From IMG/VR virus record IMGVR_UViG_3300044957_000763, positions 186,001-250,000 of that record: 64,000 nt of DNA; one strand, 5' to 3'. Below the pieces are notes generated by a model that worked only from the letters and a program-made list of their open reading frames with translations, was not told the origin of the DNA and ran no database searches. Each line of letters starts with the position of its first letter. Position 1 is the first letter of the stretch. Below are positions 19,077 to 42,797 of the stretch, piece by piece. The position numbers were made by a program, and so were the translations under genes.

Positions 19077-19170
19077 TGGTACCCGCACCGGGATTTGAAC
19101 CCGGAAGACTCCCTAATCTGGGGACAATGCACGTTATAAGCGTGGTGTTTTACCGTTAAACTATACGGGC
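19077..19170 (-). tRNA. tRNA-Ile(UAU) with 24-nt variable region
   Basis: GCCCGTA/TGCGGGT acceptor, CCACG-CT TAT AA-CGTGC, T arm CCGGG-TTCAAAT-CCCGG, encoded CCA. Confidence 0.8.
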
Positions 19171-19186
19171 GTTTGAATTAAGATTG

Positions 19187-19261
19187 TGGGCCCTGTGGGA
19201 TTCGAACCCACGCTCTAGCGGTTATGAGCCGCTTGCTTTAGGCCGACTAAGCTAAAGGCCC
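19187..19261 (-). tRNA. tRNA with CAU anticodon, Ile2 (lysidine) type
   Basis: GGGCCTT/AGGGCCC acceptor, AGCGG-CT CAT AA-CCGCT; resembles Ile2 rather than fMet. Confidence 0.8.
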
Positions 19262-19284
19262 TCAATCTTTTTAGCAAAACTTTT

Positions 19285-19369
19285 AGGAGAGTGTGGGATT
19301 TGAACCCACGGGACATTGCTGCCCACCAGTTTTCAAGACTGACCCGATAAACCGCTCCGGCAACTCTCC
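19285..19369 (-). tRNA. tRNA-Ser(UGA)
   Basis: Cloverleaf with long V-arm, loop CT TGA AA. Confidence 0.9.
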
Positions 19370-19402
19370 GTGTAGTCCTGGGCACCGAAGTGCCCAGATA
19401 AT

Positions 19403-19810
19403 TTAGTTCTTCGGCTTGTCCAACGCATCCAGACTCAGGACAAGGACATCGCCCTCTCGAGTGTAATCGAGGTGATACGTTCCTTTGGCAAGAGGGGTGC
19501 CGCGCAAATCGCACATTAACTCGGTGAAATTCACCGAGCGACTAACTGTGCTGTCGAGCGCAAGCCGCTTGCCGAGCTTAACTCGGTTTGCGTTTGGTTT
19601 CTGGTGGAATGACAGGCCAATGGCGTTGCGACTCTTGTCAACGCGAATCCTGGTGTGAGTTGCAAGGCGGTTTAGACCAAGCTCTTGACCAAGAACGTTG
19701 TTGATAAGCAGTGTGGCAACATTGCCAGATGACGAAATTGTCGCACGAGGCCGCTTACTACGCTTGTCGTTGCGACTTGGTTTGTAGTTTTCCCAAGCCA
19801 TGAGTTTCAT
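19403..19810 (-). CDS. Hypothetical basic protein
   Basis: ORF inside tRNA region; start uncertain. Confidence 0.6.
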   Translation of the reverse strand: MKLMAWENYKPSRNDKRSKRPRATISSSGNVATLLINNVLGQELGLNRLATHTRIRVDKSRNAIGLSFHQKPNANRVKLGKRLALDSTVSRSVNFTELMCDLRGTPLAKGTYHLDYTREGDVLVLSLDALDKPKN

Positions 19811-19841
19811 CTTACCACACGGTTGGCGAACTTTGCAAGCC

Positions 19842-20060
19842 CTACTCTTCTTCGGATAAACCACTAGGTCGCTTGCTACGCTTTCTCAGCACGCTACCAA
19901 GTTCGCCCCATAGATTTCGCGCTTGCTCTTCTGATACCTCTACAATATGATGCCCAACCAGTATTTGTATGGTTCCCCTGTTGGAACTACTGTGGTCTCG
20001 CACAATGGGGTCTGCGTGGTATGTACCGCGAAACATGTTTAATAGCCTTTTGATAAACAT
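19842..20060 (-). CDS. Hypothetical protein
   Basis: 72-aa ORF. Confidence 0.55.
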   Translation of the reverse strand: MFIKRLLNMFRGTYHADPIVRDHSSSNRGTIQILVGHHIVEVSEEQARNLWGELGSVLRKRSKRPSGLSEEE

Positions 20061-20099
20061 AATGCGTTTATACAGCTTATTCTATATTATAGCATAAAT

Positions 20100-20173
20100 T
20101 GGAGGTCGTACAGGGAATCAAACCCTGCTTTCGGCGTTACGAGTGCCGTGCATCGTCACAATGCTTTACGACC
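20100..20173 (-). tRNA. tRNA-Thr(CGU)
   Basis: GGTCGTA/TACGACC, loop CT CGT AA, T loop TTTGATT (atypical), CCA. Confidence 0.8.
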
Positions 20174-20178
20174 GAAAT

Positions 20179-20264
20179 TGGAGCCGACACTGGGAATTGA
20201 ACCCAGACTGGATTTCTCCACCTGCTTACCAAGCAGGCTCCGTGACCACTAGGATAATGTCGGC
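20179..20264 (-). tRNA. tRNA-Thr(GGU) with class II-type V-arm
   Basis: GCCGACA/TGTCGGC, CCTGC-TT GGT AA-GCAGG, V-arm TGGA-GAAA-TCCA. Confidence 0.8.
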
Positions 20265-20387
20265 ATGAATTCTGGGGCTCCTGCTTTGGTTGTAGCAACT
20301 CCCTTAGCAGTACGGTTACTCGGAGTTGCTATTCATCCTTTCCCATACTAACCCCAGAAACTTAGAGGACTGAGTACTTTGAAGTAC

Positions 20388-21014
20388 TTAGTTATGTGCC
20401 ATTTGAGGTACTTTGGTCAATCTTTCAAAATCAGTCCTGTCTTTGTTGGCATAGATTTTCCAAATGGCTAGGTCAAGTTCTGCAGAATCAACACCAATTT
20501 CATCTGCATAATCCAAATAGATTTTTTCTAGGCGATTGTATTCTTTTTTGCTTCCTGGGGTTGATGTCGGAATATTTGACTCTCCCAAATAATCGCGCAT
20601 AAACTTAAGCAAATGGGTGTCAATGACACCAAAACGCACATTAGGCCTAGTGCAAGTTAAAAAGAAACGAGAGGTTTTAGGACCAATACCATGAATCGAC
20701 TCCAAATCATCGACCGTGCAATTGAAAAGGTCAACACCACTTGAAATTAAAGCACGGAAACAATGCGCAAGCCTGTTGTATTGTCCTAGGCGCGACTCCA
20801 TCAGTTTTTCAAACAAAGCACCTTCAGAATCCATTGTGCGGATTTTGTCAAAAGGGGATGCGCCAACTTTTCCTTTGCTTAAAAAAGAATCAAGAAGCCG
20901 CACTTGCACACTTGCTTTTTTCCCCGCAGCAACAATACAGAAAAGAAGAAAGCACTCTAACTCTTCTTTGGTTCTGTCGAAAATAATTGTATTGTTAGGG
21001 TCTGGAAATCTCAC
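20388..21014 (-). CDS. Helix-hairpin-helix DNA glycosylase-like protein (HhH-GPD/Ogg-like)
   Basis: LESIHGIGPKTSRFFL HhH motif, VIDTHLLKF, ELDLAIW; GTG start. Confidence 0.8.
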   Translation of the reverse strand: MRFPDPNNTIIFDRTKEELECFLLFCIVAAGKKASVQVRLLDSFLSKGKVGASPFDKIRTMDSEGALFEKLMESRLGQYNRLAHCFRALISSGVDLFNCTVDDLESIHGIGPKTSRFFLTCTRPNVRFGVIDTHLLKFMRDYLGESNIPTSTPGSKKEYNRLEKIYLDYADEIGVDSAELDLAIWKIYANKDRTDFERLTKVPQMAHN

Positions 21015-21042
21015 ATGTGGAAGTATACCACATGTGAAAAAA

Positions 21043-21123
21043 TGGCGACCTGTACGGGATTCGAACCCGTCTGATGTCTACCGTGACAGGGTAGTGGGAA
21101 CAACCAAGCTCCCCCCACAGGCC
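21043..21123 (-). tRNA. tRNA-Asp(GUC)
   Basis: CTACC-CT GTC AC-GGTAG, G73, CCA. Confidence 0.9.
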
Positions 21124-21129
21124 ATAAAT

Positions 21130-21205
21130 TGGAGCACCAGGTGGGACTCGAACCCACTACCTCCACATTACCAATGTGGCGTTCATCCATATGAACTTCA
21201 AGTGC
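21130..21205 (-). tRNA. tRNA-Thr(GGU)
   Basis: CCACA-TT GGT AA-TGTGG, CCA. Confidence 0.85.
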
Positions 21206-21211
21206 ATAAAT

Positions 21212-21287
21212 TGGAGCACGCGACAGGATTCAAACCTGCTACATCCGCATTACAAGTGCGGCGTTCAATCTCATGAACTTCGCGTGC
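21212..21287 (-). tRNA. tRNA-Thr(UGU)
   Basis: CCGCA-CT TGT AA-TGCGG, T loop TTTGAAT, CCA. Confidence 0.85.
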
Positions 21288-21294
21288 AAAAATC

Positions 21295-21377
21295 TGGAGC
21301 TGGCGACAGGATTCGAACCTGCGATGTGGAATCCCTGTTTACAAAACAGGTGCAATCGACCTCTATGCAACGCCAGC
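21295..21377 (-). tRNA. tRNA-Thr(UGU) with 11-nt variable region
   Basis: CCTGT-TT TGT AA-ACAGG, V region GAT-TCCAC-ATC, CCA. Confidence 0.8.
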
Positions 21378-21402
21378 GTATCTGTATTATACCTTAAAAA
21401 CT

Positions 21403-21476
21403 TGGCCCCCTCGACAGGAATCGAACCCGTATCATGGGTGTAGAAAACCCAGGCCTTGTCCATTAGACCACGAGGG
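21403..21476 (-). tRNA. tRNA-Arg(UCU)
   Basis: CCCCTCG/CGAGGGG, TGGGT-TT TCT AC-ACCCA, CCA. Confidence 0.9.
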
Positions 21477-21484
21477 GAGAATGC

Positions 21485-21554
21485 ATGCCCTGTATGGAAT
21501 TTAATCCATTCTCCTAGTTTACAGCCAGGTATTGCTCTTCTATACTTACATGGT
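21485..21554 (-). pseudogene. Degenerate tRNA-like sequence with GUA (Tyr) anticodon
   Basis: D stem GTAT/ATAC, loop CT GTA AA, T-like ATGGA-TTAAAT-TCCAT; acceptor only 5/7 paired, no CCA. Confidence 0.4.
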
Positions 21555-21657
21555 GCGCGGTACCACACAGTCCATGCTTTCTGTCCGACTCGGTCAACTG
21601 ACAGGACATAAGCTATTATACCACAGCCTTTGAGCCGGATGCAACCACACTTAAATC

Positions 21658-21739
21658 TGGCCCCTCGAGCGGGATTCGAACCCACATTTTCAGTTCCATT
21701 ACGCTGGACGGTTTAGAAGACCGCGACGACTACCGAGGG
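21658..21739 (-). tRNA. D-arm-less tRNA-Arg(UCU)-like RNA with expanded variable region
   Basis: CCCTCGG/TCGAGGG, 8-nt connector, GCGGT-CT TCT AA-ACCGT, 22-nt V region, canonical T arm, CCA. Confidence 0.75.
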
Positions 21740-22176
21740 ATATGTTGATGAATGGCATTGTGCAGAACAGTGTCTGTATACTGAATTGGTATATTTGGCA
21801 TATTTGATTTGAACGCCTTGGCCTTTTCTTCAATTGAAATTAAGTAATCAGCAGTCAATCCAATCTCAATACATTGCTCAACCTCTTGTGGTTCAATGTA
21901 CCTAAAACCACATTGAGTTCCGTTGAGATAATATGACTTATCATCACGCAGCCCAAGTGCAAAATTTTCTGGAATGGCATACCATTCAGGTGCAATTGAT
22001 AAATCTTTGTTGAGTCCGTGCCTGGATTGCCCTGATTCTGTCAATTCAATTAGGCACAATTTCAGTTTTGAGTCCAGTGTTAGCGGAACTTCGAGGACTT
22101 CAAATAGAGACCATGTTATTTTATTGAGTTGATGCACTGGCAATGAGTTAACTTGGATTTTGATTAATTCACTCAT
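21730..22176 (-). CDS. Hypothetical protein
   Basis: ORF; stop codon lies within the 5' end of the downstream tRNA-like gene. Confidence 0.65.
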   Translation of the reverse strand: MSELIKIQVNSLPVHQLNKITWSLFEVLEVPLTLDSKLKLCLIELTESGQSRHGLNKDLSIAPEWYAIPENFALGLRDDKSYYLNGTQCGFRYIEPQEVEQCIEIGLTADYLISIEEKAKAFKSNMPNIPIQYTDTVLHNAIHQHIPR

Positions 22177-22363
22177 TTTGAAACGTCTCATCTAGCTTGG
22201 TAGAAACTTTGACAACGAAATCTTGAATGTCTTCCTTGAGCAATCCAAGTACATCAGCGACTGGTTGCTCAGCCGCTTTCCCGCGCAATCTGTTCATCAA
22301 AGAACTTGTGATGTCAACTGTCATGCCAACTGCGTGAAGATTTGGGTGGTTCTCGATACTCAT
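22169..22363 (-). CDS. Hypothetical protein
   Basis: 64-aa ORF. Confidence 0.55.
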   Translation of the reverse strand: MSIENHPNLHAVGMTVDITSSLMNRLRGKAAEQPVADVLGLLKEDIQDFVVKVSTKLDETFQNE

Positions 22364-22385
22364 GTTGTTAGTTTACCTTAATTCT

Positions 22386-22460
22386 TGGCCCCCTCGATGG
22401 GATTCGAACCCATACCCTGTCGTTTAGGAAACGACCGCACATCCCTTGCGCTTCGAGGGG
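22386..22460 (-). tRNA. tRNA-Arg(CCU)
   Basis: GTCGT-TT CCT AA-ACGAC, CCA. Confidence 0.9.
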
Positions 22461-22469
22461 ATTTGATAT

Positions 22470-22687
22470 GATTTGACAGGTGAGCGTACCCGAGATTCTG
22501 CTCTATGTCTTGATTTATCTATTGGCCTCTAACCCGACCATCATAGCGTCGCTCACCCGCTAGGTCTGTTTGAGTTGCAGTCTCAGTAGTGCAAGCGACG
22601 AATCTCCTACCTTAAGCGACACTGTCTCGAGGTTTCTCTCCGCGCCTCTTTCGAGATTGGAGCCAAGACTTCTCTGCCTGTCAAATC
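22470..22687 (-). ncRNA. rnpB: Minimal RNase P RNA-like gene (catalytic domain only, no S-domain)
   Basis: P1 11 bp; P2 GUCUUGG/UCAAGAC; P3; P4 ACC-U-CGAGA/UCUCG-GGU with bulged U; P5; P6 pseudoknot; P7; P15-P17; conserved CAA, GGU, AGAUAAAU and CAGAA...GGUA elements. Confidence 0.85.
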
Positions 22688-22692
22688 TATTA

Positions 22693-22917
22693 TTACACAA
22701 CATCTGTGTTATTGTCAACTATTGGCACATGTTTGATATGTGGATATCGTTGACCGTATGTAACACGCACGTGGCACTCATCGCATTCATGCGGGAATTG
22801 CGGCGGGTGTGTTAAAAATGCTTGGCCAGTAGGTATCATCTTGCCTTTGCCGCACACATCGCACTGCATATCTATTTGAATTGTCATCATTGGTGTTTTG
22901 ATTTCCATATTCTTCAC
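22693..22917 (-). CDS. Small zinc-ribbon protein
   Basis: CDVC...HECDEC. Confidence 0.65.
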   Translation of the reverse strand: MKNMEIKTPMMTIQIDMQCDVCGKGKMIPTGQAFLTHPPQFPHECDECHVRVTYGQRYPHIKHVPIVDNNTDVV

Positions 22918-22927
22918 CTACTTTACA

Positions 22928-22950
22928 TGGTTCGCACGACAGGATTTGAA
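22928..22950 (-). pseudogene. Orphan tRNA 3' fragment
   Basis: TTCAAAT-CCTGT-CGTGCGA-A-CCA immediately after the endonuclease stop codon; no 5' T-stem strand. Confidence 0.6.
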
Positions 22951-22951
22951 T

Positions 22952-23383
22952 TTACATCGACCAAATATAGTCTTTAGCATATGTAAAATTAGGTGCGGTA
23001 TTTTTGGCATCAGAGAGCCTGATTGAAGCCTTGCCTTTGCCAGACCAAATTTCAACTGGAACCCATAATACTTCATTGATTTTTGGAACAAAAACAAGAA
23101 ATACATCAATTTGATTTTTAGTATATCCCTTGCGGATTGTTTTTCCGTTTTTGCTTCTTCCACTCCAACTAGATAGATTTACCACAACACTTCCTTGTGT
23201 TCTTTTGTTTGGTTTTCCATCGGCATATTTGACTTGACACCTATACATTTGACCATTTTTATCAATAATACAATCATATAGGCAACCTTCAATTGTTGGC
23301 TTGCTCAGAATGCAGTTGGTTGTAATTGCCCGCTGCTCTGCTGCAAGCATGGCTAAATGACCCTTTTGAGATGTGGATAACAT
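22952..23383 (-). CDS. PD-(D/E)XK homing-type endonuclease
   Basis: KGHLAM...YDCIIDKNGQMYRCQVKY...YTKNQIDVFLVF, pattern of the PDDEXK_5-like family. Confidence 0.8.
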   Translation of the reverse strand: MLSTSQKGHLAMLAAEQRAITTNCILSKPTIEGCLYDCIIDKNGQMYRCQVKYADGKPNKRTQGSVVVNLSSWSGRSKNGKTIRKGYTKNQIDVFLVFVPKINEVLWVPVEIWSGKGKASIRLSDAKNTAPNFTYAKDYIWSM

Positions 23384-23432
23384 TTCAATGTTATACAGCG
23401 AGTTTCCAAGCTATAGCCACTCAATTTCAAAT

Positions 23433-23509
23433 TGGTCTCCCCTGTGCGACTCAAACGCACGACCTTCGGCTTCGCGGACCGATGTTCTATTCAACTGAAC
23501 TAAGGGGAG
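23433..23509 (-). tRNA. tRNA-Arg(GCG)
   Basis: CTCCCCT/AGGGGAG, TCGGT-CC GCG AA-GCCGA, T loop TTTGAGT, CCA. Confidence 0.8.
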
Positions 23510-23515
23510 AATATT

Positions 23516-23824
23516 TTACCCTAAAAACCAATCCGCAAGACCAGCTTGCTCTTTGGGTCTCCATTTTGTCGCCATTTCAGGAGTGGTTAGTATGGCATTA
23601 ACGTATTGGTACCCACATGACATACATTCCCAAAATTCAGGATAGCGGTCAATTAAATCCGGGCAACCACACTCTATGCATGTTGGCACTGTGAATTTGT
23701 CGTGATTGCCTATTTCAAAGTTTGGAAACAGTGCTCCTTTTCTTTGCGACAATACAATCTCACTACAAGGATTAAGTTCGTATATCATTGTGTCTTTGCC
23801 AAAGAAAATTTCGCCCACACTCAT
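23516..23824 (-). CDS. Hypothetical zinc-ribbon protein
   Basis: CIECG...WECMSCG. Confidence 0.65.
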   Translation of the reverse strand: MSVGEIFFGKDTMIYELNPCSEIVLSQRKGALFPNFEIGNHDKFTVPTCIECGCPDLIDRYPEFWECMSCGYQYVNAILTTPEMATKWRPKEQAGLADWFLG

Positions 23825-24133
23825 CTACATATCCACAATTGTATCTAATACAGAAGTCTTGTCTTTTACTTGAGGGTCTAATCTTGAGAATATCTTTTCT
23901 TGACCAAGTTCTGTGAGCCTGAATATTTGCACTGTCCATTGTTCAGACGATTGGCACAATCCTTCATATTTATCTTCGTAGATGATGTCGTTGTCTAGAC
24001 CCCATTGAATGCTTTCTCTCAGAAATCTGTTTCGACCAACATGACCATCGAATACGATGTAGTCTGCCTTTCCATCTCGAAACGCTCTTGTGAATGAGTC
24101 AAGATATTCTTTTTCAGTAAACTTCTGTTCCAT
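23825..24133 (-). CDS. Hypothetical protein
   Basis: 102-aa ORF. Confidence 0.65.
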   Translation of the reverse strand: MEQKFTEKEYLDSFTRAFRDGKADYIVFDGHVGRNRFLRESIQWGLDNDIIYEDKYEGLCQSSEQWTVQIFRLTELGQEKIFSRLDPQVKDKTSVLDTIVDM

Positions 24134-24140
24134 TTAAGAA

Positions 24141-24530
24141 CTATACCCGATTGCGCCATTTGTTCAGCGCATCAATAGCATTAATAACGTCTTCTGAGAG
24201 TTCAGTAGCAGTTTTGGCCTCAAGTTCTTTGATTCTTGCGATAAGTCTTGGCACTAGATTGACCGAAGCTACTGCAAGTTCGGCATTGGCTTTTGCGTTG
24301 TGGTTGTCGCCCAGAAACGTTGCCATGCATTCTTCGTAGTAAAAATTGCATTCTGGATTTCCATAACGCTCTTGCAAGTCATATGGTCCGATTTCCATGT
24401 AATCACAGTCATATTCATCTTGGCTTAATTCATTACAGAACCATGGCAATTCTGTTGCGCCCCTGATTGCTTCGTATTGCTCTATGGCTGTTGCCAAGTC
24501 AACTTCTTGTTCTTCCAGAAAATCTTCCAT
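24141..24530 (-). CDS. Hypothetical protein (Ead/Ea22-like)
   Basis: ATELPW...NAELAVASVNLVPRLIARIKELEA pattern. Confidence 0.65.
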   Translation of the reverse strand: MEDFLEEQEVDLATAIEQYEAIRGATELPWFCNELSQDEYDCDYMEIGPYDLQERYGNPECNFYYEECMATFLGDNHNAKANAELAVASVNLVPRLIARIKELEAKTATELSEDVINAIDALNKWRNRV

Positions 24531-24593
24531 AGTTTATTATGACAGATAGCAGCGCAATGCCATCTGCGGAGGAGCTTACTATGAATAGGTCTG

Positions 24594-24827
24594 TTATTTG
24601 CCGTTGCGCCGGCATTCGCGTTCACCGCTCATTCGTTGATTATCTGACACAATCACCGGAATAGTAATTGGCCAAATAAGACCGCAAAAACCAACCTCGG
24701 CAAGTAACAACCATCTGGGTTGCACCCCTCTTGCAAGTTCTGTTTTGCCTGTGTCAGAAGCCGTATACCATACGTATATTGCCACTATTTGTGCAACCAG
24801 AAGATAAAGCATTATCCATATTGACAT
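24594..24827 (-). CDS. Small membrane protein
   Basis: Two hydrophobic segments; start moved downstream of the tRNA. Confidence 0.6.
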   Translation of the reverse strand: MSIWIMLYLLVAQIVAIYVWYTASDTGKTELARGVQPRWLLLAEVGFCGLIWPITIPVIVSDNQRMSGERECRRNGK

Positions 24828-24848
24828 ATGAATAGTGTACCATAAATT

Positions 24849-24927
24849 TGGAGCGCATGACAGGAATCGAACCTGCATTTTCATCCCTTAACTTATCTAG
24901 TTTCGAAGACTAGTGGTATACATGCGC
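24849..24927 (-). tRNA. D-arm-less tRNA-Arg(UCG)-like RNA with expanded variable region
   Basis: GCGCATG/CATGCGC, 7-nt connector, CTAGT-CT TCG AA-ACTAG, 20-nt V region, T arm GCAGG-TTCGATT-CCTGT, CCA. Confidence 0.75.
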
Positions 24928-24940
24928 GTGAATTGTGACC

Positions 24941-25015
24941 TGGAGGCCGGAACGGGACTCTAACCCGCATTCTTCTCGTTTGCAGCGAGATGCTTGGACT
25001 TTTAGCTATCCGGCC
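24941..25015 (-). tRNA. tRNA-Cys(GCA)
   Basis: TCTCG-CT GCA AA-CGAGA, U73, T loop TTAGAGT. Confidence 0.85.
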
Positions 25016-25536
25016 TTCAGGTCGACACCAAGTACGTATTGTGAGTTGATAACACTCATTCCAACTTGGATTGGTTCAACGGGAAACTGTTTGGTTGCGA
25101 TAACACCCAAAAACATTGGGGATGGCAGGAAATATGCTTTGTCTTTTGGACACAAATCTGTTTCGTGTACTTCTAGCGACGGCAGTTCCTTTGCATTGTC
25201 TGGGTGAACCACCACTTGTGTACAAATTAGTTCCATATCTGAAAAGCGTGAATCAACATCGAGCATTATATTGATGTCATCTATTGACTCGCCTTTAATG
25301 GTTTCTTTCTCTGGTCTCATACTTGTGCTCTTTTCAAGCATGTCCATCAGAACTTGGTCCCAATCTATGTCGTTTTTGGTCAATGGGATGACCATTTCTT
25401 CTTGACCAGCAGACATAACTATCTTGCCTGTCATTGGACTGTATATGATTGAGATTGCCTGGTCTTGTGTTTCGTATCGCGCTAAATTGTCAAGCGGAAG
25501 TTCATCCCGCATCAATACCTTGTTGCATAATTCCAT
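25006..25536 (-). CDS. Hypothetical protein
   Basis: 176-aa ORF; stop overlaps the 5' part of tRNA-Cys. Confidence 0.65.
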   Translation of the reverse strand: MELCNKVLMRDELPLDNLARYETQDQAISIIYSPMTGKIVMSAGQEEMVIPLTKNDIDWDQVLMDMLEKSTSMRPEKETIKGESIDDINIMLDVDSRFSDMELICTQVVVHPDNAKELPSLEVHETDLCPKDKAYFLPSPMFLGVIATKQFPVEPIQVGMSVINSQYVLGVDLKAG

Positions 25537-25557
25537 GCGGTATTATGTCGAAAAATC

Positions 25558-25633
25558 TGGAGCTCCGAGTCAGAGTCGAACTGACGAATGAGGCTTTTGC
25601 AGAACCTTCCCTTGGCCGCTTGGGTACCGGAGC
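25558..25633 (-). tRNA. tRNA-Cys(GCA)
   Basis: AGGTT-CT GCA AA-AGCCT, U73, CCA. Confidence 0.9.
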
Positions 25634-25649
25634 ATAGTAAGCCGGAGCT

Positions 25650-25853
25650 TTATACCCCGGCTAGGTCGCGTTCCTCTTCAATGAGGTTTTGTGCCTCATC
25701 GTGAGAAATATCAATTGCTTGAACGATAAATCGCTCAATGTGGTTGTACGGCAACCACCTGCCTGTTTCTGCGTCGAAGACTCGAGGCACGCCGCCCTCT
25801 TCTGGGATGCGAAGCACTGAACCCTCGAGCTCGAAGTAACTTGTGTTCTTCAT
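25650..25853 (-). CDS. Hypothetical protein
   Basis: MKNTSYFELEG..., preceded by GGAGG. Confidence 0.6.
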   Translation of the reverse strand: MKNTSYFELEGSVLRIPEEGGVPRVFDAETGRWLPYNHIERFIVQAIDISHDEAQNLIEEERDLAGV

Positions 25854-25900
25854 GCTGTGCCTCCTATGCAATGTTAGTATACCACGATTTTGGTATGTTT

Positions 25901-25975
25901 TGGAGCGGGGTACGAGACTCGAACTCGTCTCTTCAGATTGGAAATCTGAGGCCCGAACCTCTAGACCAACCCCGC
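25901..25975 (-). tRNA. tRNA-Gly(UCC)
   Basis: TCAGA-TT TCC AA-TCTGA, U73, CCA. Confidence 0.9.
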
Positions 25976-26084
25976 CTGTGTTGCGCATTGATATTGCGCA
26001 ATCTATTAGACGTTATACAACGTCAAAAAGTTCCATGTTAGTCAAGTTTGTAGACTGGTTACTAGTCGCTACTCTATCGCAGAT

Positions 26085-26125
26085 TGTGTCCACGGGTGGG
26101 ATTCGAACCCACGCTCTCTTTTGAG
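26085..26125 (-). pseudogene. 3' remnant of a class II tRNA
   Basis: CTC-AAAA-GAG V-arm-like hairpin and GTGGG-TTCGAAT-CCCAC T arm; no matching 5' half found. Confidence 0.45.
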
Positions 26126-26160
26126 TTGATGAACCACATCGGTCGTACCAACATGAAATC

Positions 26161-26303
26161 TGGCCCCGCAGATGGAGTCGAACCACCCACTCGTACAAGC
26201 GATATCTCCTCAACAAGCGTTCAAGTGTGTCTTACTCAACAGCACGATGTACGTCATACTACCTTTGATAGCACTATCCAGCTTGCATCCCAGAATGCGG
26301 GGG
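26161..26303 (-). ncRNA. 143-nt tRNA-like RNA (acceptor plus T arm enclosing ~110 nt)
   Basis: CCCCGCA/TGCGGGG-CCA, GGTGG-TTCGACT-CCATC, internal helix CGTACA/TGTACG. Confidence 0.55.
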
Positions 26304-26308
26304 TAAAT

Positions 26309-26384
26309 TGGTCCTCCTGACCGGACTTGAACCGGCTACTTCCTGACAGACAATCAGGTGCTTCGACTCTTGAGCTTCAGAAGG
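26309..26384 (-). tRNA. Atypical tRNA-Asp(GUC)
   Basis: CCTGA-TT GTC TG-TCAGG; pyrimidine at position 37 and A73 are atypical for Asp. Confidence 0.6.
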
Positions 26385-26393
26385 ATAAATTGG

Positions 26394-27578
26394 CTACGCG
26401 GGCTTGATTATCTTGAGAGCTCTTTCCAAGTAAAAATCATATCGCCCTTCTTGTGAAACAATTGGTGCGCCTGGAGTGATGCCTGCGCATCCTTCCACAT
26501 ACACCCTGGCCTTATCATTGACATTATTGTGTGCCAAGTAGAAAAAGTCTTTGCTGGCTGGTCTTTCACCAATGCTGTACCATCCAAACTGCATTCCAGT
26601 AACATGAGTTCGGCAACAGTTTCGGAACGAGAACATAGCTCCTGGGGTGAACAGTCCGCTTTTTGCTCCAGTATACGGCATGAAGTCGTCAACTATCATG
26701 TCGGTGATACTGGCTGGTACGACAGTTGCCTGATATCCCCTTGAACTGCCATGCGAGAATAGAGACCCGCCGATTTCGTGTCTTCCGCCGTGAGCGTAAA
26801 ATGGGAATCCTCCATCAACTCTAAATATCAAATTGACATAGGAGGTTCCAAAATTCACCACGTACATGCCGCTACTGCCGCTATTTGGCAATTTGTCTGT
26901 TCCAAAAACATTGATGCCTATGAGACAGCCACTTGCATTGCAACTGTCCATTTTGTTTGCAAGAGTGTTTCCGCCTACGAATTGGTATCCAATATGACCT
27001 CTGTCAATTATGTCAGTGGTAATGAGTTTGTAGTCACCACCACCAATAGTATCACTATACGCTTCGCACTTAGTTAATTCTATACTAGATACATCAGCAG
27101 AGCCATTAGGCCATATTTCGTTGCTACCAACCAGGAATCCGGTGCTATTTTTACTACCGGTCATGAACTGCACTCGGCACCCCAGTAACTGCATATTGCT
27201 GGTTGATTGAACATCTGCGTCAACCCCGATTTCAAAACCTACCTGCTTATTGCCAAATGTTCGAACACAAACATCTGTGACTCTAACACGCTTAGTTCCG
27301 ATAAACCTAAACGCTGAGGTTCCATCTGCGCCTCGATAATTTATCAAATTCCAAAACGGGTCTGCAACAATATTGCCCTGTAGGTAGTCACCTGGTGTTG
27401 AAGACTTGAACGTGATGGTTTTGTCTATAGTCCACTCGCGCCCAATCCACGGAATATACAGTTGTTTTCCTGTGCCTTTATTGAACTCAGCGGCAGCAGC
27501 AAGAAACTTTTCTGTGTCTGACGCACCAGGCATTTGCGATACGTCAATGATTTTAGCGGAAGTAGTGGAGTTTAGCAT
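26394..27578 (-). CDS. Pectate-lyase-like beta-helix protein (tailspike/depolymerase-like)
   Basis: N-terminal DVSQMPGASDTEKFLAAA..QLYIP, repetitive beta-strand pattern. Confidence 0.6.
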   Translation of the reverse strand: MLNSTTSAKIIDVSQMPGASDTEKFLAAAAEFNKGTGKQLYIPWIGREWTIDKTITFKSSTPGDYLQGNIVADPFWNLINYRGADGTSAFRFIGTKRVRVTDVCVRTFGNKQVGFEIGVDADVQSTSNMQLLGCRVQFMTGSKNSTGFLVGSNEIWPNGSADVSSIELTKCEAYSDTIGGGDYKLITTDIIDRGHIGYQFVGGNTLANKMDSCNASGCLIGINVFGTDKLPNSGSSGMYVVNFGTSYVNLIFRVDGGFPFYAHGGRHEIGGSLFSHGSSRGYQATVVPASITDMIVDDFMPYTGAKSGLFTPGAMFSFRNCCRTHVTGMQFGWYSIGERPASKDFFYLAHNNVNDKARVYVEGCAGITPGAPIVSQEGRYDFYLERALKIIKPA

Positions 27579-27646
27579 GCGTCATCATTAGCCGATGACT
27601 TGTTTCATGCCTGCAAAACTCAAATCTATAGGCCATATGGCAAATC

Positions 27647-27802
27647 TTAATCTTCGTCAACAGCCTTGGATGCCCTAATGAATCTGCGCCAAAGGCTATC
27701 AATCCTCCACGAGCCTCCGCCATGTGCGGAATCGGTCTTACGATTACGAAAATGCAATCGGTCTCTTTTGCGATTGCCGTTCTTTTTCTTGTAATTAGCC
27801 AT
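27647..27802 (-). CDS. Small basic hypothetical protein (51 aa)
   Basis: Manual translation MANYKKKNGNRKRDRLHF...KAVDED. Confidence 0.45.
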   Translation of the reverse strand: MANYKKKNGNRKRDRLHFRNRKTDSAHGGGSWRIDSLWRRFIRASKAVDED

Positions 27803-27820
27803 TGTTCTTCGCTTAAAACT

Positions 27821-27896
27821 TGGCGCGGATGACGGGTACTGACCCCGCTATCTGTTGCGTGACAGGCAACCGGATTAACCATCTTCCTCCACCCGC
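27821..27896 (-). tRNA. tRNA-Asp(GUC)
   Basis: GTTGC-CT GTC AC-GCAAC, G73, CCA; atypical T loop GTCAGTA. Confidence 0.75.
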
Positions 27897-27914
27897 GCAT
27901 ATGATTGGCATTAT

Positions 27915-27994
27915 TGGTGCCGGTCAAGACCTTACTCTACATCCTCACAGAGTCTTAGACTCTGTGAGGCGCCTCTGGTTATAGAGGAACCGGC
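27915..27994 (-). ncRNA. tRNA-like RNA with double-length anticodon arm (UAA) and degenerate T arm
   Basis: GCCGGTT/GACCGGC-A-CCA, D-like CCTC/GAGG, perfect CCTCACAGAGTC/GACTCTGTGAGG hairpin. Confidence 0.5.
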
Positions 27995-28163
27995 GTTTGT
28001 TGGGGCGGCAATTGCTCACCGCCCTATTCCCTATGGATTAACTTGAACAAGTTTACTATGTCCGACCGCACCAGATTATTCTAGCTTTTCCAGTTTCGCT
28101 TGGTGGCCACAAGGTTCAGCTTCTTTTGATGTGCACTTAGCCTCACGAGCTTGTTCGAAGATG

Positions 28164-28192
28164 ATTATACCACAAGACCATTCGTTTGTCAA
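28164..28192 (-). promoter_or_regulatory. Consensus sigma70-type promoter inside the tRNA array
   Basis: TTGACA-17 nt-TATAAT with TG at the extended -10 position. Confidence 0.8.
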
Positions 28193-28206
28193 TAGTGCTT
28201 GGGTTT

Positions 28207-28431
28207 TTACACCAAAAGCACATTCATATCGTTTGGGACACGGTCTCCAGTGGCATTGTAATACGCTTCTTGTGCTTTTTGTAGCACTTCGAGCCAGTGA
28301 GCATTCTCGTCATCTGGATTAAACGCTTCGCCATCATGTGCATCGAGATATTGTTCAGTATTGTCGTTCTCAATCATCAGTCTCAATGCCGCAAGAACTT
28401 CTTCGTTGATTTCGTTCATATGTTCCATCAT
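28207..28431 (-). CDS. Hypothetical acidic protein
   Basis: 74-aa ORF. Confidence 0.55.
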   Translation of the reverse strand: MMEHMNEINEEVLAALRLMIENDNTEQYLDAHDGEAFNPDDENAHWLEVLQKAQEAYYNATGDRVPNDMNVLLV

Positions 28432-28656
28432 ACCTTATTCTTTAGGTCGATTTCCACTATAACCGTCTGTTACAAAGCAGTTTTCTGGTGCCTTTTCAAT
28501 GAAATGCTTTGCCTTGAGCGCAGAGTAAAATTTGCGTATATCGCCTTTGTAATACTGGACACCGCCATGCTTACAGTCTCGAACGCATTTGACATAGAAA
28601 ACTTTTCTATTCACACGGTTGATTTATGAGCGAATTGCGTTTTTACCTGTGAAAAA

Positions 28657-28746
28657 TGGAGGAACGGGTGGGATTCGAACCCACGGAACGCTTTCACGTT
28701 CACTTCTTTAGCAAAGAAGCTGAATAAACCTCTCTCGCACCGTTCC
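28657..28746 (-). tRNA. tRNA-Ser(GCU)
   Basis: CTTCT-TT GCT AA-AGAAG, long V-arm, CCA. Confidence 0.9.
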
Positions 28747-28752
28747 GAAATC

Positions 28753-28841
28753 TGGAGGAGAGCAACGGAATTGAACCGTAGCCACTTGCGCGGCCGTAAC
28801 GCTTTCCAGGCGTACCCCATCACCGTCAGGGATTACTCTCC
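28753..28841 (-). tRNA. tRNA-Ser(GGA)
   Basis: Loop CT GGA AA, long V-arm, CCA. Confidence 0.9.
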
Positions 28842-28861
28842 ATATTGGCATTATACAAATC

Positions 28862-28949
28862 TGGCGGAACGCAGAGTACTCGAAACTCAACCCTTTCAGG
28901 TCCCATCCCTTAGCAGGGGAGGCAGGTTCGCCTGTCCTGTTTACGCTCC
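28862..28949 (-). tRNA. tRNA-Ser(GCU)
   Basis: Loop CT GCT AA, long V-arm, G73, CCA. Confidence 0.85.
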
Positions 28950-28954
28950 ATATT

Positions 28955-29025
28955 TGGTGGCAACTTGTGGTCTCGAGCCACAACACCGGCCCTGGGGCCG
29001 GCTGTCCGTCCTACCGGACGTCGCC
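28955..29025 (-). ncRNA. 71-nt degenerate tRNA-like RNA
   Basis: GGCGAC/GTTGCC-A-CCA, TCCG/CGGA, CCGGC/GCCGG with 6-nt loop, TGTGG-CTCGAGA-CCACA. Confidence 0.45.
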
Positions 29026-29031
29026 AAATTC

Positions 29032-29120
29032 TGGCGGATAGCTGGGGAGTCGAACCCCAAAGGCCTTATCAGCTCACCTGTTTTCGAAACAGTTCCCATC
29101 ACCCATTGGGTTGGCTATCC
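29032..29120 (-). tRNA. tRNA-Ser(CGA)
   Basis: Loop TT CGA AA, long V-arm, G73, CCA. Confidence 0.9.
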
Positions 29121-29263
29121 ATTTGTTTCCGGGTGGCTCCCCACCCGGAGGTAATTCAGCGCACTGAACCACCAATTTCGACCGAAGGTCATAACGCTGT
29201 TCTCACGAACTGGCCTCGCGCCGCGACAGAGGAAGTCTTCAGTCCTCTGCAACTATTATACCA

Positions 29264-29350
29264 CGGCGGAAGCAGTGGGAATCGAACCCACGAAACCTTT
29301 CAGTTCAGGCCGCTTCAAACGGCTGTCCTCGTCCGTGCCGGGCTACTTCC
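29264..29350 (-). tRNA. tRNA-Ser(UGA)
   Basis: Loop TT TGA AG, long V-arm, G73. Confidence 0.8.
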
Positions 29351-29372
29351 GCTGTGGTTTGTTGATAAATCT

Positions 29373-29445
29373 GGAGAGGCTAACGGGAATCGAACCCGTG
29401 TCTTAACATTGGCAATGTTATGTATTACCGCTATACGATAACCTC
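29373..29445 (-). tRNA. tRNA-Gly(GCC)
   Basis: TAACA-TT GCC AA-TGTTA, U73, CCA. Confidence 0.9.
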
Positions 29446-29457
29446 GTTTTTGCTCAG

Positions 29458-29529
29458 AGCGGAAGACGGGATTCGAACCCGCAACTTCTTGCCTGGCAGG
29501 AAAGCACTCTACCATTGAGTTACATCCGC
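29458..29529 (-). tRNA. tRNA-Gly(GCC)
   Basis: GCGGATG acceptor, loop CT GCC AG, CCA not encoded. Confidence 0.8.
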
Positions 29530-29538
29530 ACTGAGCAT

Positions 29539-29907
29539 TTATTCTTCTTGTTCCATGTTTAGTTTACGACCTTCGGCTGCGCTGGTTGCAGTGTTTTTGG
29601 TTTGCCATAGACCAATTCCAATTATCGCACCTAGAATCAAGGCAAGTATCAATCCTTGTTTTATCGCACTCAACCACAGTTCCGCAGAAGACAGTTGTCC
29701 AGACCAGCTTAGTCCTGAGTGACTTCCAGGACCAATAACTGGAGCGTATTTAAGCAAGACCCATTTACCATTAACCCATAAGAATTCGTTTTCTTTGCAG
29801 CAATCACACAATTCATCTGACCACAAGTGCGCGTTACCCATTGGGCACTTTCGATATAACAGCGGTAGAACCACTGTTATCACACTTGCCATTCTGCCTG
29901 TAATCAT
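29539..29907 (-). CDS. Hypothetical membrane protein
   Basis: C-terminal hydrophobic helix; start uncertain. Confidence 0.5.
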   Translation of the reverse strand: MITGRMASVITVVLPLLYRKCPMGNAHLWSDELCDCCKENEFLWVNGKWVLLKYAPVIGPGSHSGLSWSGQLSSAELWLSAIKQGLILALILGAIIGIGLWQTKNTATSAAEGRKLNMEQEE

Positions 29908-30299
29908 CCCAGTGAAATTCCATATTCTGCCGGAAGAGCATTATATTCTGTCCATTCTGCAAAGCAACTTTTACACAGTGTCTTAAGCCACCCTGCTCGC
30001 CGGCAAAGTGCGCCTGGTTCGCCACAACATTCACATGTCTTTGCGGCTAACTTTTCTGCCCCTTCGATAATTTCATACACTTGGTCAAAAACATTTTCTT
30101 GTAAAGCACCAATGTAGTAACGCAATCCACCGAACTTTTCCTTGATTTGCAAGATTGTGTAATCAGGTGCCAGCTTTCTAATGTCTTTGTCAAGCTGTGC
30201 AATGATTGGATACCAACCAGCATCGCATTCAAGAAAAACATTTCTTCGACCGCCGTCCCAATGGTGTTTAAGTTGTTGCTCAAGTTGTTCTTTGGTCAT
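29904..30299 (-). CDS. Conserved phage hypothetical protein
   Basis: CDAGWYPII...QIKEKFGGLRYY...CECCG...WLKTLC. Confidence 0.75.
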   Translation of the reverse strand: MTKEQLEQQLKHHWDGGRRNVFLECDAGWYPIIAQLDKDIRKLAPDYTILQIKEKFGGLRYYIGALQENVFDQVYEIIEGAEKLAAKTCECCGEPGALCRRAGWLKTLCKSCFAEWTEYNALPAEYGISLG

Positions 30300-30308
30300 T
30301 GTTTTCCT

Positions 30309-30746
30309 CTAAGGTGTATTGATTCCAGCAAGGCCAAGCAATCTTTCCTGCTCGGCAATTGGCAACTTCTTGAATTGCTCTGACAATGATTCCACTTTCT
30401 TTTTTCTTTTCTCTCTTTGCTCTTGTGCCTTGCGTTTCTTGTCCCACTTTTGATGTTTTTCCCACCAGTCAGCAAGAGACCGCGCATTGGCATTCTTTCC
30501 ATCGTAGATGTACTTGTCTTGTTCGGCCGCAGACATGATTCTGATTGTACTGCACAGCAATGCAGTCCAGTTGTCTACTTCTGACTGATTGCCATAATAC
30601 TCACTCGCGGCGGTTTTCCATGCATCAGTTTCAGCCTTAGTGGGTTTCAGTCCGATAGCAGGAAGCAAATACAAAAGATGACCAGCAACACGCTTCGACT
30701 CTGCTTGGCGTGCGTTTGGTTCGGAGTAATCTGTACGACATGGCAT
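30309..30746 (-). CDS. Conserved phage hypothetical protein
   Basis: MPCRTDYSEP...LADWWEKHQKWDKKR; start moved downstream of the tRNA. Confidence 0.7.
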   Translation of the reverse strand: MPCRTDYSEPNARQAESKRVAGHLLYLLPAIGLKPTKAETDAWKTAASEYYGNQSEVDNWTALLCSTIRIMSAAEQDKYIYDGKNANARSLADWWEKHQKWDKKRKAQEQREKRKKKVESLSEQFKKLPIAEQERLLGLAGINTP

Positions 30747-30799
30747 AACATAACCATTATAACACACTGGTTTCAAGTTGTCAAGTGCCTTTGTAAATT

Positions 30800-30875
30800 T
30801 GGCGCCCCAGGACGGACTCGAACCGCCGTCTCTTACGTTCGAAGCGTAAGTTTCTATCCACTGAATTACTGGGGC
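30800..30875 (-). tRNA. tRNA-Arg(UCG)
   Basis: TTACG-CT TCG AA-CGTAA, CCA. Confidence 0.9.
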
Positions 30876-30881
30876 AAATTT

Positions 30882-30968
30882 TGGTGGCTCTCCCCGGACT
30901 CGAACCGGGACGCTTTGTGGGCACGATATTTTGAGTATCGCATGTACTACCAATTTCATCAGAGAGCC
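30882..30968 (-). tRNA. tRNA-Leu(CAA), with V-arm
   Basis: CGATA-CT CAA AA-TATCG, A73, CCA. Confidence 0.9.
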
Positions 30969-30974
30969 GAAATC

Positions 30975-31049
30975 TGGAGGCCGGGGTGGGACTCTAACCC
31001 ACGCTCTTTCACTTTGCAGGCGAACGCCTTAACACTTGGCTACCCGGCC
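30975..31049 (-). tRNA. tRNA-Cys(GCA)
   Basis: TTCGC-CT GCA AA-GTGAA, T loop TTAGAGT, U73, CCA. Confidence 0.85.
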
Positions 31050-31064
31050 GGTTGTTCTTAAATT

Positions 31065-31148
31065 TGGTGCCGCACCTCGGAATCGAACCGAGACAAGAGG
31101 ATGATTTTAAGTCATTTGCTTTTACCAGTTTAGCTACTCCAGTGCGGC
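31065..31148 (-). tRNA. tRNA-Leu(UAA) with 5-nt insertion after the acceptor stem and no V-arm
   Basis: GCCGCAC-TGGAG-TA-D arm; loop CT TAA AA; V region CTCTTGT. Confidence 0.75.
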
Positions 31149-31173
31149 ATTGTTTATATGTAAGCGCAAAACT

Positions 31174-31250
31174 TGGTGCTCCTACTCAGATTCGAACTGA
31201 GACTTTCATAGGTTTGAGCTATGTGACTCTACCAATTGGCCTATAGGAGC
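31174..31250 (-). tRNA. tRNA-Leu(CAA) lacking V-arm
   Basis: CATAG-CT CAA AC-CTATG, 5-nt V loop, A73, CCA. Confidence 0.85.
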
Positions 31251-31252
31251 AT

Positions 31253-31338
31253 TGGTGCGGATGAGAGGACTTGAACCTCCAAGGGGTTTCCCCCACAGCC
31301 GTCTCAGGACTGCGCGTTTACCATTTCGCCACATCCGC
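31253..31338 (-). tRNA. tRNA-Leu(GAG)
   Basis: Loop CT GAG AC, V-arm, CCA. Confidence 0.9.
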
Positions 31339-31343
31339 AAAAT

Positions 31344-31427
31344 TGGACCGGGTAAAAGGACTTGAACCTTCACGTCTTTCGACAAATGCTCCTAAGGCAT
31401 TCGCGGCTACCGTTACGCCATACCCGG
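31344..31427 (-). tRNA. tRNA-Leu(UAG)
   Basis: AATGC-CT TAG GA-GCATT, V-arm, U73 (atypical). Confidence 0.85.
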
Positions 31428-31431
31428 ATTT

Positions 31432-31517
31432 TGGTCTCGATGACCGGATTTGAACCAGCACGCTTTGTGGGCGCTACCACCTCAAGGTAGTGCGTCTACC
31501 AATTTCGCCACATCGAG
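31432..31517 (-). tRNA. tRNA-Leu(GAG)
   Basis: CTACC-TT GAG GT-GGTAG, V-arm, CCA. Confidence 0.85.
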
Positions 31518-31523
31518 ATATTT

Positions 31524-42784: not shown

Positions 42785-42797
42785 TGTATAATCATAT

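Follow-up and report, generated by a model that had tools for sequence, protein, structure and literature searches.

A putative miniature RNase P RNA without a specificity domain, encoded within the tRNA array of a probable huge phage

The 64-kb stretch of viral DNA analysed here (hereafter the window, out of a contig of 479 kb) carries on its minus strand, at positions 22470–22687, a gene for what we interpret as a miniature bacterial-type RNase P RNA that is active and matures the tRNAs of the phage, probably together with the RnpA protein of the host. We put the probability of this reading at about 0.75; both catalysis and expression are inferred. Its components are not equally secure. It is very likely that the RNA is a homologue of RNase P RNA held under selection, since this claim is supported by homology, covariation, invariant core nucleotides and tRNA-array context. 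That the RNA cleaves the 5′ ends of tRNAs in vivo is likely, yet this remains an inference in the absence of activity data. The comparison with relatives shows that the whole catalytic domain (P1–P5, the P6 pseudoknot and P15–P17) has been kept, together with CR-I, CR-IV, CR-V and the bulged U of P4, a nucleotide conserved universally in RNase P RNAs, and that the specificity domain with CR-II and CR-III (P8–P12) is missing, 17 nt being left within P7.

A sequence-only reading of the window had proposed a phage-borne RNase P RNA devoid of both the specificity domain and P18, lying within a tRNA array. This proposal held with respect to homology, covariation, invariance and context, while one rationale attached to it found no support and some of its details have to be qualified, as described below.

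The gene, its surroundings and the anatomy of the RNA

The gap that houses the RNA gene is bounded on one side by an open reading frame (ORF) at 22693–22917 (minus strand), which lies upstream and encodes a 74-aa zinc-ribbon-like protein, and on the other by the gene for tRNA-Arg; no credible ORF was found within 22470–22687 itself. ARAGORN predicts 30 tRNAs in the window, 29 of which are on the strand of the RNA gene. Adjacent tRNAs are spaced by 6–7 nt, the 3′-CCA is encoded in 25 of the 30 genes, and 28 of the 30 predicted tRNAs have a canonical T-loop (GGTTCRANYC-type). The last count leaves unsupported the suggestion that loss of the specificity domain would suit array tRNAs with aberrant D and T loops.

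A sigma-70-like promoter candidate precedes the gene. It rests on nothing more than its match to the consensus, and its sequence overlaps with the 3′ end of the ORF at 22693–22917; the transcription start predicted from it may lie a few nucleotides inside P1 as that helix was originally drawn. No terminator was found between the RNA gene and tRNA-Arg(CCU). The small flanking ORFs, including the one for the zinc-ribbon-like protein, were considered as dedicated cofactors of the RNA and rejected, because they are not conserved beside the RNA in its relatives. Recoding of stop codons in the window was likewise considered and dropped, the standard genetic code fitting in the recoding test (long ORFs cover 81%).

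The minus strand of 22470–22687 reads exactly as it had been transcribed, and every helix and element named in the sequence-only reading was located at the position given for it, including P4 with its three base pairs, bulged U and five base pairs. The features are listed below; percentages are shares of paired cells among relatives.

22689–22718, minus: sigma-70-like promoter candidate (TTGACA, 18-nt spacer, TG-n-AATAAT; 11 of 12 matches)
22470–22687, minus: putative minimal RNase P RNA gene, catalytic domain only, about 212–218 nt
22386–22460, minus: tRNA-Arg(CCU), CCA-encoding, 9 nt downstream of the RNA gene
22687–22677 / 22480–22470, minus: P1, which closes the RNA
22674–22672 / 22484–22482, minus: P1 extension of 3 bp, GAG/CUC, inside the conserved strings AGAGRA and GCUCA
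22669–22663 / 22513–22507, minus: P2, GUCUUGG/UCAAGAC, 96% paired; five of seven pairs change on both sides
22662–22638, minus: P3 hairpin, CUCC/GGAG plus UCUC/GAGG, GAAA loop
22625–22637, minus: CR-I and the 5′ strand of P4, AGAA-ACC-U-CGAGA, the U being U22630
22633–22631, 22630 and 22629–22625 / 22495–22491 and 22490–22488, minus: P4, made of ACC, bulged U and CGAGA against UCUCG and GGU
22624–22621 / 22581–22578, minus: P5, 99% paired; four of four pairs covary
22619–22615 / 22553–22549, minus: P6 pseudoknot, UCGCU with AGCGA in the P17 loop; five of five pairs covary
22611–22607 / 22589–22585, minus: P7, GGUAG/CUACU, 85–94% paired, covarying
22577–22575, minus: J5/15, CAA, aligning to 'GCAA' of the Rfam class A consensus
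22527–22574, minus: P15-P16-P17 module with L15
22574–22572 / 22529–22527, minus: P15, 3 bp, 70–76% paired, the least supported helix
22566–22563 / 22539–22536, minus: P16, 93% paired
22561–22558 / 22548–22545, minus: P17, 87–90% paired
22534–22532, minus: L15 GGU, invariant in 36 of 36 members
22521–22514, minus: CR-IV / J18/2, UAGAUAAA, aligning to 'uAGAUgAAUG' of RF00010
22487–22501, minus: CR-V and the 3′ strand of P4, GCAGAA-UCUCG-GGU-A, with GCAGAA at 22501–22496

The terminal helix P1 differs in sequence from lineage to lineage and its pairing is always kept; on the structure-blind alignment described below it is 76% paired, in a region where alignment noise is high. Its short extension covaries in relatives (columns 12–14/305–307), where GC, AU, CG and UA pairs are all encountered: the equivalent is GAU/AUC in loci L058 and L063 and AAAG/CUUU in L012. 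The outer three base pairs of P3 are 95–97% paired and covary, and the length of this hairpin ranges among relatives from 10 to about 60 nt. The columns of the P6 pseudoknot hold GAACC/GGUUC in L003. Alignment to the RF00010 consensus places the CR-IV block, of the AGnnnAU type, as UAGAUAAAU at 22521–22513, ahead of the 3′ strand of P2.

Two details of the sequence-only reading held only in part. What it described as a 17-nt loop within P7 is rather the shrunken remnant of a short hairpin. In relatives this hairpin sits inside P7, between conserved strings of GAG and CGUU..AC; in the window, where P7 encloses the 17-nt remnant at the site of the bacterial specificity domain (P8–P14), it has degenerated to about 2 bp. 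Similarly, P15 is present as claimed, but it comprises only three base pairs and has the weakest support of all helices. In the window, as in most compact members, the 3′ strand of P15 is joined to J18/2 without an insert that could form the P18 hairpin, P18 being encountered only in L006 and larger relatives. P18 is known to dock onto the specificity domain, and its loss along with that domain across the family, a view inferred from the sequences only, may fit this role. The single-sequence fold of the window RNA gives −71.3 kcal/mol, a modest z of −2.4 against shuffles.

Relatives, homology and covariation

Blastn returned three partial matches, all in genomes of uncultured phages of 595–642 kb (LR756511, LR756502 and LR745206), which by eye show the same layout, compensatory changes in P4 and sequence strings nearer to the bacterial consensus. 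In IMG/VR, 62 loci were retrieved with a degenerate pattern that runs from the J18/2 block to the 3′ strand of P4. About 48 of these loci carry the full element; one of them, L024, is the window's own contig, a viral contig of 478,840 bp. Altogether 36–42 distinct relatives were available from IMG/VR contigs, many of them larger than 100 kb. Family members span 184–322 nt from P1 to P1, and in a compact class the distance from the 5′ strand of P4 to J18/2 is only 110–130 nt. At least three tRNAs are present at 25 of 40 family loci, almost always on the strand of the RNA; a tRNA lies within 300 nt at 16 of the 40 and within 100 nt downstream at 10. About a quarter of the loci, including the closest relatives of the window copy (L001–L003, L022 and L061), have no nearby tRNA within the few kilobases examined per locus. 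In a collection of prokaryotic genomes, the compact form was encountered only in tRNA-rich stretches of MAG contigs, among them a 362,763-bp contig labelled 'Paceibacterota' and a 1.36-Mb contig labelled 'Armatimonadota'. Searches against deposited phages gave no match either for the 6 kb around the site (megablast) or for the Rfam-positive L017 copy (blastn).

The assignment of the window to a phage is likely rather than proven. It rests on the IMG/VR classification and on similarity to published huge-phage genomes, in assemblies of which the nearest relatives of the RNA are found, and not on hallmark genes. Indeed, no phage hallmark was found among the ten largest ORFs of the window, which are either orphans or auxiliary genes; the latter encode a glycosyltransferase, an NAPRTase, a methyltransferase-HAD fusion and a DUF6580 protein. 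The gene for the DUF6580 protein sits behind a cobalamin riboswitch. Such gene content may be that of an accessory region of a huge phage, with which it is compatible, and proves nothing in itself.

The Rfam RNase P models, with which the sequence-only reading had proposed to check the identification, failed to match the window copy at the gathering threshold and also at E ≤ 10 on a 601-nt slice; covariation among relatives, the other analysis it had proposed, is supportive. We do not count the Rfam miss against the identity of the RNA, because the relatives bridge the gap. Three larger phage loci score above the gathering threshold of RF00010, the model for bacterial class A, which is 100 bits: L017 with 192, L021 with 191 and L060 with 181 bits. 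Each of them adjoins a tmRNA gene and 10–30 tRNAs. When relatives were scanned in permissive mode, intermediate and compact members gave matches to Rfam RNase P models that were below threshold and nonetheless significant, namely L006 (62.5 bits, 1e-16), L039 (3e-13), L046 (3e-9), L132 (3e-8), L058 (2e-7), L009 (1e-6) and L029 (1e-3). The family thus grades from its compact members into larger phage copies that pass the class A threshold. The Rfam alignment of L006 is informative in this respect. It runs through P1/P2, P3 and GAGGAA-UUCGG, skips about 140 model positions, and resumes with the 3′ strand of P5, GCAA, P15, AAACA, P16/P17, CCGGGUU, P18, UAGAUAAAUG, the 3′ strand of P2, ACAAAAUCCCGGCUA and the 3′ strand of P1. 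The deleted block is the specificity domain, and the order of helices according to Rfam agrees with our labelling of the family.

A covariance model, R1, was built from 21 relatives with the window copy excluded; it extends from P2 to the 3′ strand of P4 and leaves P1 off. R1 matches the window over its full length at 22487–22669, with 139.8 bits and E = 6.6e-39, and yields no other credible match in the whole 64 kb. It also detects the phage RNAs certified by Rfam (L060 at 53.7 bits, as well as L017 and L021) and a bacterial locus, L071, which is a class A RNA of Peptostreptococcaceae located beside a 5S rRNA gene and scoring 270 bits with Rfam. When aligned to R1, the L071 RNA has 143 inserted nucleotides at a point that the phage model covers with 44 positions. 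The RNA of E. coli, M1, is matched only weakly (12.9 bits) and in its 3′ part only, for which reason the link to cellular RNase P is taken to rest on L071, L060, L017, L021 and Rfam. The absence of the specificity domain does not exclude RNase P identity, since the same absence defines the minimal type of Pyrobaculum.

Covariation was assessed on two alignments. The first is a structure-blind alignment made with MAFFT from 22 compact members. In it, 86.7% of cells are paired, as compared with 32–42% when the partners are slid by 1–3 columns, and in 52 of the 59 pairs both partners change. The structure has a covariation score of 0.564, the control one of about 0.10, and none of 500 shuffles reaches the former; RNAalifold run on the same alignment recovered de novo P3, P4 with a one-base bulge, P5, P7, P16 and P17. 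In a model-guided alignment of 42 distinct sequences, the share of paired cells rises to 93.5%, against 29–38% in the slid controls; helix by helix it amounts to 96% for P2, 97% for P3, 99% for P5, 94% for P7, 93% for P16, 90% for P17 and 70% for P15. The two pseudoknotted helices lie outside the model and are nevertheless paired in 95% (P4) and 97% (P6) of cells. P4, which has two invariant pairs, covaries at 5–6 of its eight pairs; P6 is 90–97% paired over both alignments and covaries at all five. On the ground that compensatory changes occur in every helix, both pseudoknots included, the RNA cannot be regarded as a mere relic.

A referee may object that the conservation of the family was imposed by the way in which it was collected. 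This is partly true of CR-IV and CR-V, both of which are spanned by the search pattern, and their conservation has been discounted. The remaining core nucleotides were outside the pattern: the A-G-x-A-A of CR-I, the bulged U of P4 with the C that follows it, the second A of J5/15 and the G-G-U of L15 are invariant in all 36 distinct members examined.

Among the loci recovered in the course of this work are circularly permuted genes for RNase P RNA, present on two contigs of IMG/VR and on five others from metagenomes. In these genes the new 5′ end leads into J18/2 and the 3′ strands of P2 and P4. A short linker, 4 nt long in L039 and L046, then stands where P1 would be, and after it come P2, P3, P4 and the remainder of the molecule up to a new 3′ end, which base-pairs with the new 5′ end. 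Most permuted copies have a class-B-like specificity domain. Covariation among the copies is seen in P2, in P4 and in the helix formed by the new ends. Scanning loosely for this gene order returned at least 119 chance matches, of which none was real among the 80 loci examined, and a two-gap pattern was used instead. If expressed, the permuted genes would be, to our knowledge, the first case of this ribozyme being circularly permuted in nature.

Proposed mechanism, protein partner and rival explanations

In the mechanism that we propose, the RNA would be transcribed either from its own promoter or within the transcript of the tRNA array and would fold into the active-site core of RNase P. The acceptor stem and 3′-RCCA of phage pre-tRNAs would be bound via the GGU of L15 and the adenosine of J5/15, and the 5′ leaders would be cut by metal-ion catalysis at P4. 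Pairing of the L15 GGU with the 3′-CCA of tRNAs is a possibility inferred from these elements, to be seen beside the 25 of 30 tRNA genes in the window that encode CCA. The 3′ end of the RNA itself may be freed when the tRNA-Arg located 9 nt downstream is cut at its 5′ end. The phage would thereby gain control over the maturation of its array of about 30 tRNA genes, without depending on how much RNase P RNA the host supplies.

The most probable partner would be host RnpA, which binds to a surface within the catalytic domain. The sequence-only reading had noted that the window encodes no RnpA, and within the window this held: the RNR motif typical of RnpA is missing from all open frames of at least 70 aa, although these cover only 64 of 479 kb. 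Using E. coli RnpA as the single query, no match was obtained to PHROG families. Tblastn with the same query, a weak test, gave none in those huge phages that have the RNA, and its matches in deposited 'phage' records correspond to host contamination or fragments. RNAs reduced to the catalytic domain are weak in vitro, and activity in vivo may require a protein that remains unidentified.

The observations could also be accommodated by assuming that the RNA is not an enzyme in its own right, but a sponge or re-targeting subunit that binds host RnpA and either starves the host holoenzyme or forms a hybrid of altered preference. The part of the molecule that binds the protein (P2/P3, J18/2 and the P4 region) has indeed been kept and the part that confers affinity for ordinary tRNAs lost, and no phage RnpA was found in window ORFs, PHROG families or huge-phage records. 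A pure decoy, however, would need neither the bulged U, the CR-I adenosines, the J5/15 adenosine and the L15 GGU nor the P6 and P15–P17 module, and these substrate-binding and catalytic elements are all invariant or covarying. We regard the sponge as unlikely, without being able to exclude it; in its hybrid-enzyme version, it amounts to our preferred explanation with a different emphasis. Alternatively, the RNA may be an active ribozyme whose main substrates are not tRNAs but other RCCA-bearing or tRNA-like structures, located for instance in polycistronic phage RNAs or in host RNAs. Loss of the specificity domain is known to relax the choice of substrate (PMC4919922), and roughly one in four family loci, including L001–L003, L022 and L061, lacks a nearby tRNA. 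Against this possibility, the window copy and many relatives sit in tRNA arrays on the same strand, the CCA encoded by 25 of 30 tRNA genes matches the L15 GGU, and no alternative substrate has been identified. It too appears improbable, though not ruled out.

A further explanation would have the RNA be a bacterial rnpB that was captured and is now decaying as a pseudogene, or owe its resemblance to RNase P RNA to chance. In its favour, one may cite the failure of Rfam to recognize the window copy and the unimpressive z-score of −2.4 for the single-sequence fold. It is all but excluded by the existence of dozens of divergent copies with compensatory changes everywhere and invariant core nucleotides, and by the E-value of 6.6e-39 against a model made without the window copy. 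Nor are the relatives duplicates of one assembly, since 36–42 distinct sequences are represented. The reading that we favour is that of a phage tRNA-maturing RNase P RNA, most probably served by host RnpA.

Comparison with known RNase P RNAs and significance

With bacterial class A RNAs (RF00010; E. coli M1 and Thermotoga maritima P RNA), the window RNA shares the order of P1–P7, including the geometry of P4 and the P6 pseudoknot, as well as the CAA of J5/15, P15, the AAACA of J15/16, P16, P17, the GGU of L15, J18/2 with AGAUAAAU and ACAGAA leading into the 3′ strand of P4. It differs in size, class A RNAs typically measuring 340–420 nt (PMC4919922) as compared with about 215 nt here, in the reduction of P8–P14 with CR-II and CR-III to 17 nt, in the absence of P18, in the additional GAG/CUC extension of P1, in the lack of a match to RF00010 and in being phage-borne. 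The catalytic domain of RNase P RNA comprises P1–P6 and P15–P18, its active site is made up of CR-I, CR-IV and CR-V, and the CR-II and CR-III of the specificity domain read the D and T loops of the substrate (PMC4919922). Whether RnpA is present or not, the isolated bacterial catalytic domain cleaves pre-tRNA, though more slowly and with lower affinity (PMC4919922). Such fragments of the E. coli and Bacillus subtilis RNAs possess the same set of helices as the phage RNA. They are, however, laboratory truncations, whereas the phage RNA belongs to a natural conserved family in which P7 is closed by a short remnant.

A natural precedent exists in archaea. RNase P RNAs of Pyrobaculum naturally consist of the catalytic domain only (PMC4919922), and the type T/type P RNA of Pyrobaculum and other Thermoproteaceae (Lai et al. 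2010, as cited in PMC4919922) is, like the phage RNA, about 200 nt long, with the catalytic domain kept and nearly all of the specificity domain gone. The likeness to type T pointed out in the sequence-only reading thus holds for the reduction, but not for a closer relationship: neither the window copy nor its relatives match the Rfam RNaseP-T model in E-value mode, and the best Rfam matches of the relatives are to bacterial A or B or to the generic archaeal model. Furthermore, the phage RNA is of bacterial type, with its P6 pseudoknot, P15–P17 and L15 GGU, and its expected partner is bacterial RnpA, in contrast to the several archaeal proteins of the archaeal minimal enzyme. The two minimal RNAs are of independent origin and their similarity is convergent. 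Peripheral helices and those of the specificity domain have also been lost, with retention of P4 and CR-I, CR-IV and CR-V, from fungal mitochondrial RNAs of the RPM1 type and from the RNAs of Mycoplasma fermentans and of CPR bacteria. These reduced RNAs, unlike that of the phage, belong to the sole RNase P enzyme of their cell or organelle. CPR RNAs dispense with P12–P14 and P18 (PMC8172020), yet retain most of the specificity domain. Mitochondrial forms usually lose P15–P17 and L15 as well.

The kind of molecule described here is consequently known, as is the natural loss of the specificity domain in Pyrobaculum; what is likely to be new is a minimal form of bacterial type borne by a virus. 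An all-Rfam scan of megaphages reported only tRNAs and a tmRNA (PMC8172020). The literature that we searched mentions no RNase P RNA that is encoded by a phage or permuted in nature; since most subscription journals were outside the scope of this search, such absence is no proof. It is tempting to go further and to speculate that huge phages possess a family of RNase P ribozymes that mature tRNAs with hijacked host RnpA or without any protein, that their arrays are thereby independent of host RNA, that these are the smallest bacterial-type RNase P RNAs known (about 184–220 nt), overlooked because Rfam misses them, and that a naturally permuted lineage exists alongside. For this bolder reading as a whole, the balance at present tips slightly towards doubt.

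RNase P is regarded as a near-universal cellular ribozyme, and the components of translation that phages are known to take over include tRNAs, tmRNA, synthetases and ribosomal proteins. If our main reading is true, a virus-encoded RNase P RNA extends this take-over to the processing of tRNAs. Natural RNAs without a specificity domain would moreover offer ready minimal ribozymes for studying the catalytic domain alone or with RnpA, and are suited to the study of substrate choice without measurement of the T-loop. Since routine annotation misses the family, a dedicated model would change the annotation of huge-phage genomes.

Circularly permuted RNase P RNA genes

To our knowledge, no naturally occurring permuted RNase P RNA has been known. 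Genes of this kind were identified in two metagenomic loci, L039 and L046:

L039:785-1061, minus strand, permuted RNase P RNA gene
L046:2495-2735, plus strand, permuted RNase P RNA gene

and further in loci L270, L272, L275, L276 and L277. The gene order is J18/2, P2′ and P4′, followed by a short linker, then P2, P3 and P4, and finally the remainder of the molecule; the linker, which is 4 nt long in both L039 and L046, replaces P1, while the new 5′ and 3′ ends of the RNA pair together. Compensatory changes were observed in P2, P4 and this terminal helix across at least seven distinct permuted sequences. Most permuted copies retain a class-B-like specificity domain, and two lie within tRNA arrays, on viral contigs of 65 kb and 127 kb.

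Surroundings of the minimal RNA and other loci in the window

19077-31601, minus strand, tRNA array
22693-22917, minus strand, small ORF (74 aa) with paired CxxC motifs, zinc-ribbon-like
23516-23824, minus strand, small ORF with paired CxxC motifs, zinc-ribbon-like
42796-42881, plus strand, cobalamin riboswitch of the AdoCbl-II family, scoring above threshold at 40.7 bits
44244-45434, strand opposite to ORF 42926-44236 and next after it, NAPRTase gene
47368-47442, plus strand, lone tRNA with anticodon UCA, called tRNA-SeC by ARAGORN

Isoacceptors are strongly duplicated in the array (5 Thr, 6 Leu, 5 Arg and 5 Ser). Several of its tRNAs exceed the usual length of their kind: Ile-UAU measures 94 nt, the Thr tRNAs 83-86 nt and Asp 81 nt. 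The two detectors also disagree, six calls being made by ARAGORN only and three by Rfam only. The excess length and the disagreement suggest that the array includes tRNAs that are divergent or that carry introns or long variable arms.

The CxxC ORFs are interleaved with the RNase P RNA gene and the tRNA genes. The 74-aa ORF ends 5 nt upstream of this RNA, whose putative promoter falls inside the ORF; neither ORF is conserved beside RNase P RNA among the relatives.

The UCA tRNA, for which CCA is not encoded, might be an opal suppressor. However, the standard code fits the window, with long ORFs covering 81%, and genes become no longer under recoding.

The riboswitch lies immediately upstream of ORF 42926-44236, which encodes DUF6580 and an N-terminal methylation motif. 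The ORF is an auxiliary gene under riboswitch regulation in a phage contig.

Compact and larger copies on other contigs

Compact copies also occur outside viral-labelled contigs:

L094:3508-3674
L112:845-1064

One compact RNA resides on a 1.36-Mb contig labelled Armatimonadota, surrounded by scattered tRNAs and small ORFs. Another is on a 'Paceibacterota' MAG contig of 362,763 bp, the same size as the IMG/VR huge-phage contig of locus L014. Both contigs probably represent phage DNA binned as bacterial, or prophage.

Larger RNAs exceed the Rfam class A threshold on three phage contigs:

L017:5410-5721
L021:12987-13316
L060:8848-9131

These score 181-192 bits and measure 284-330 nt. Each is accompanied, within a few kb, by a gene for tmRNA and by 10-30 tRNA genes, the whole constituting a translation/RNA-processing 'island'.
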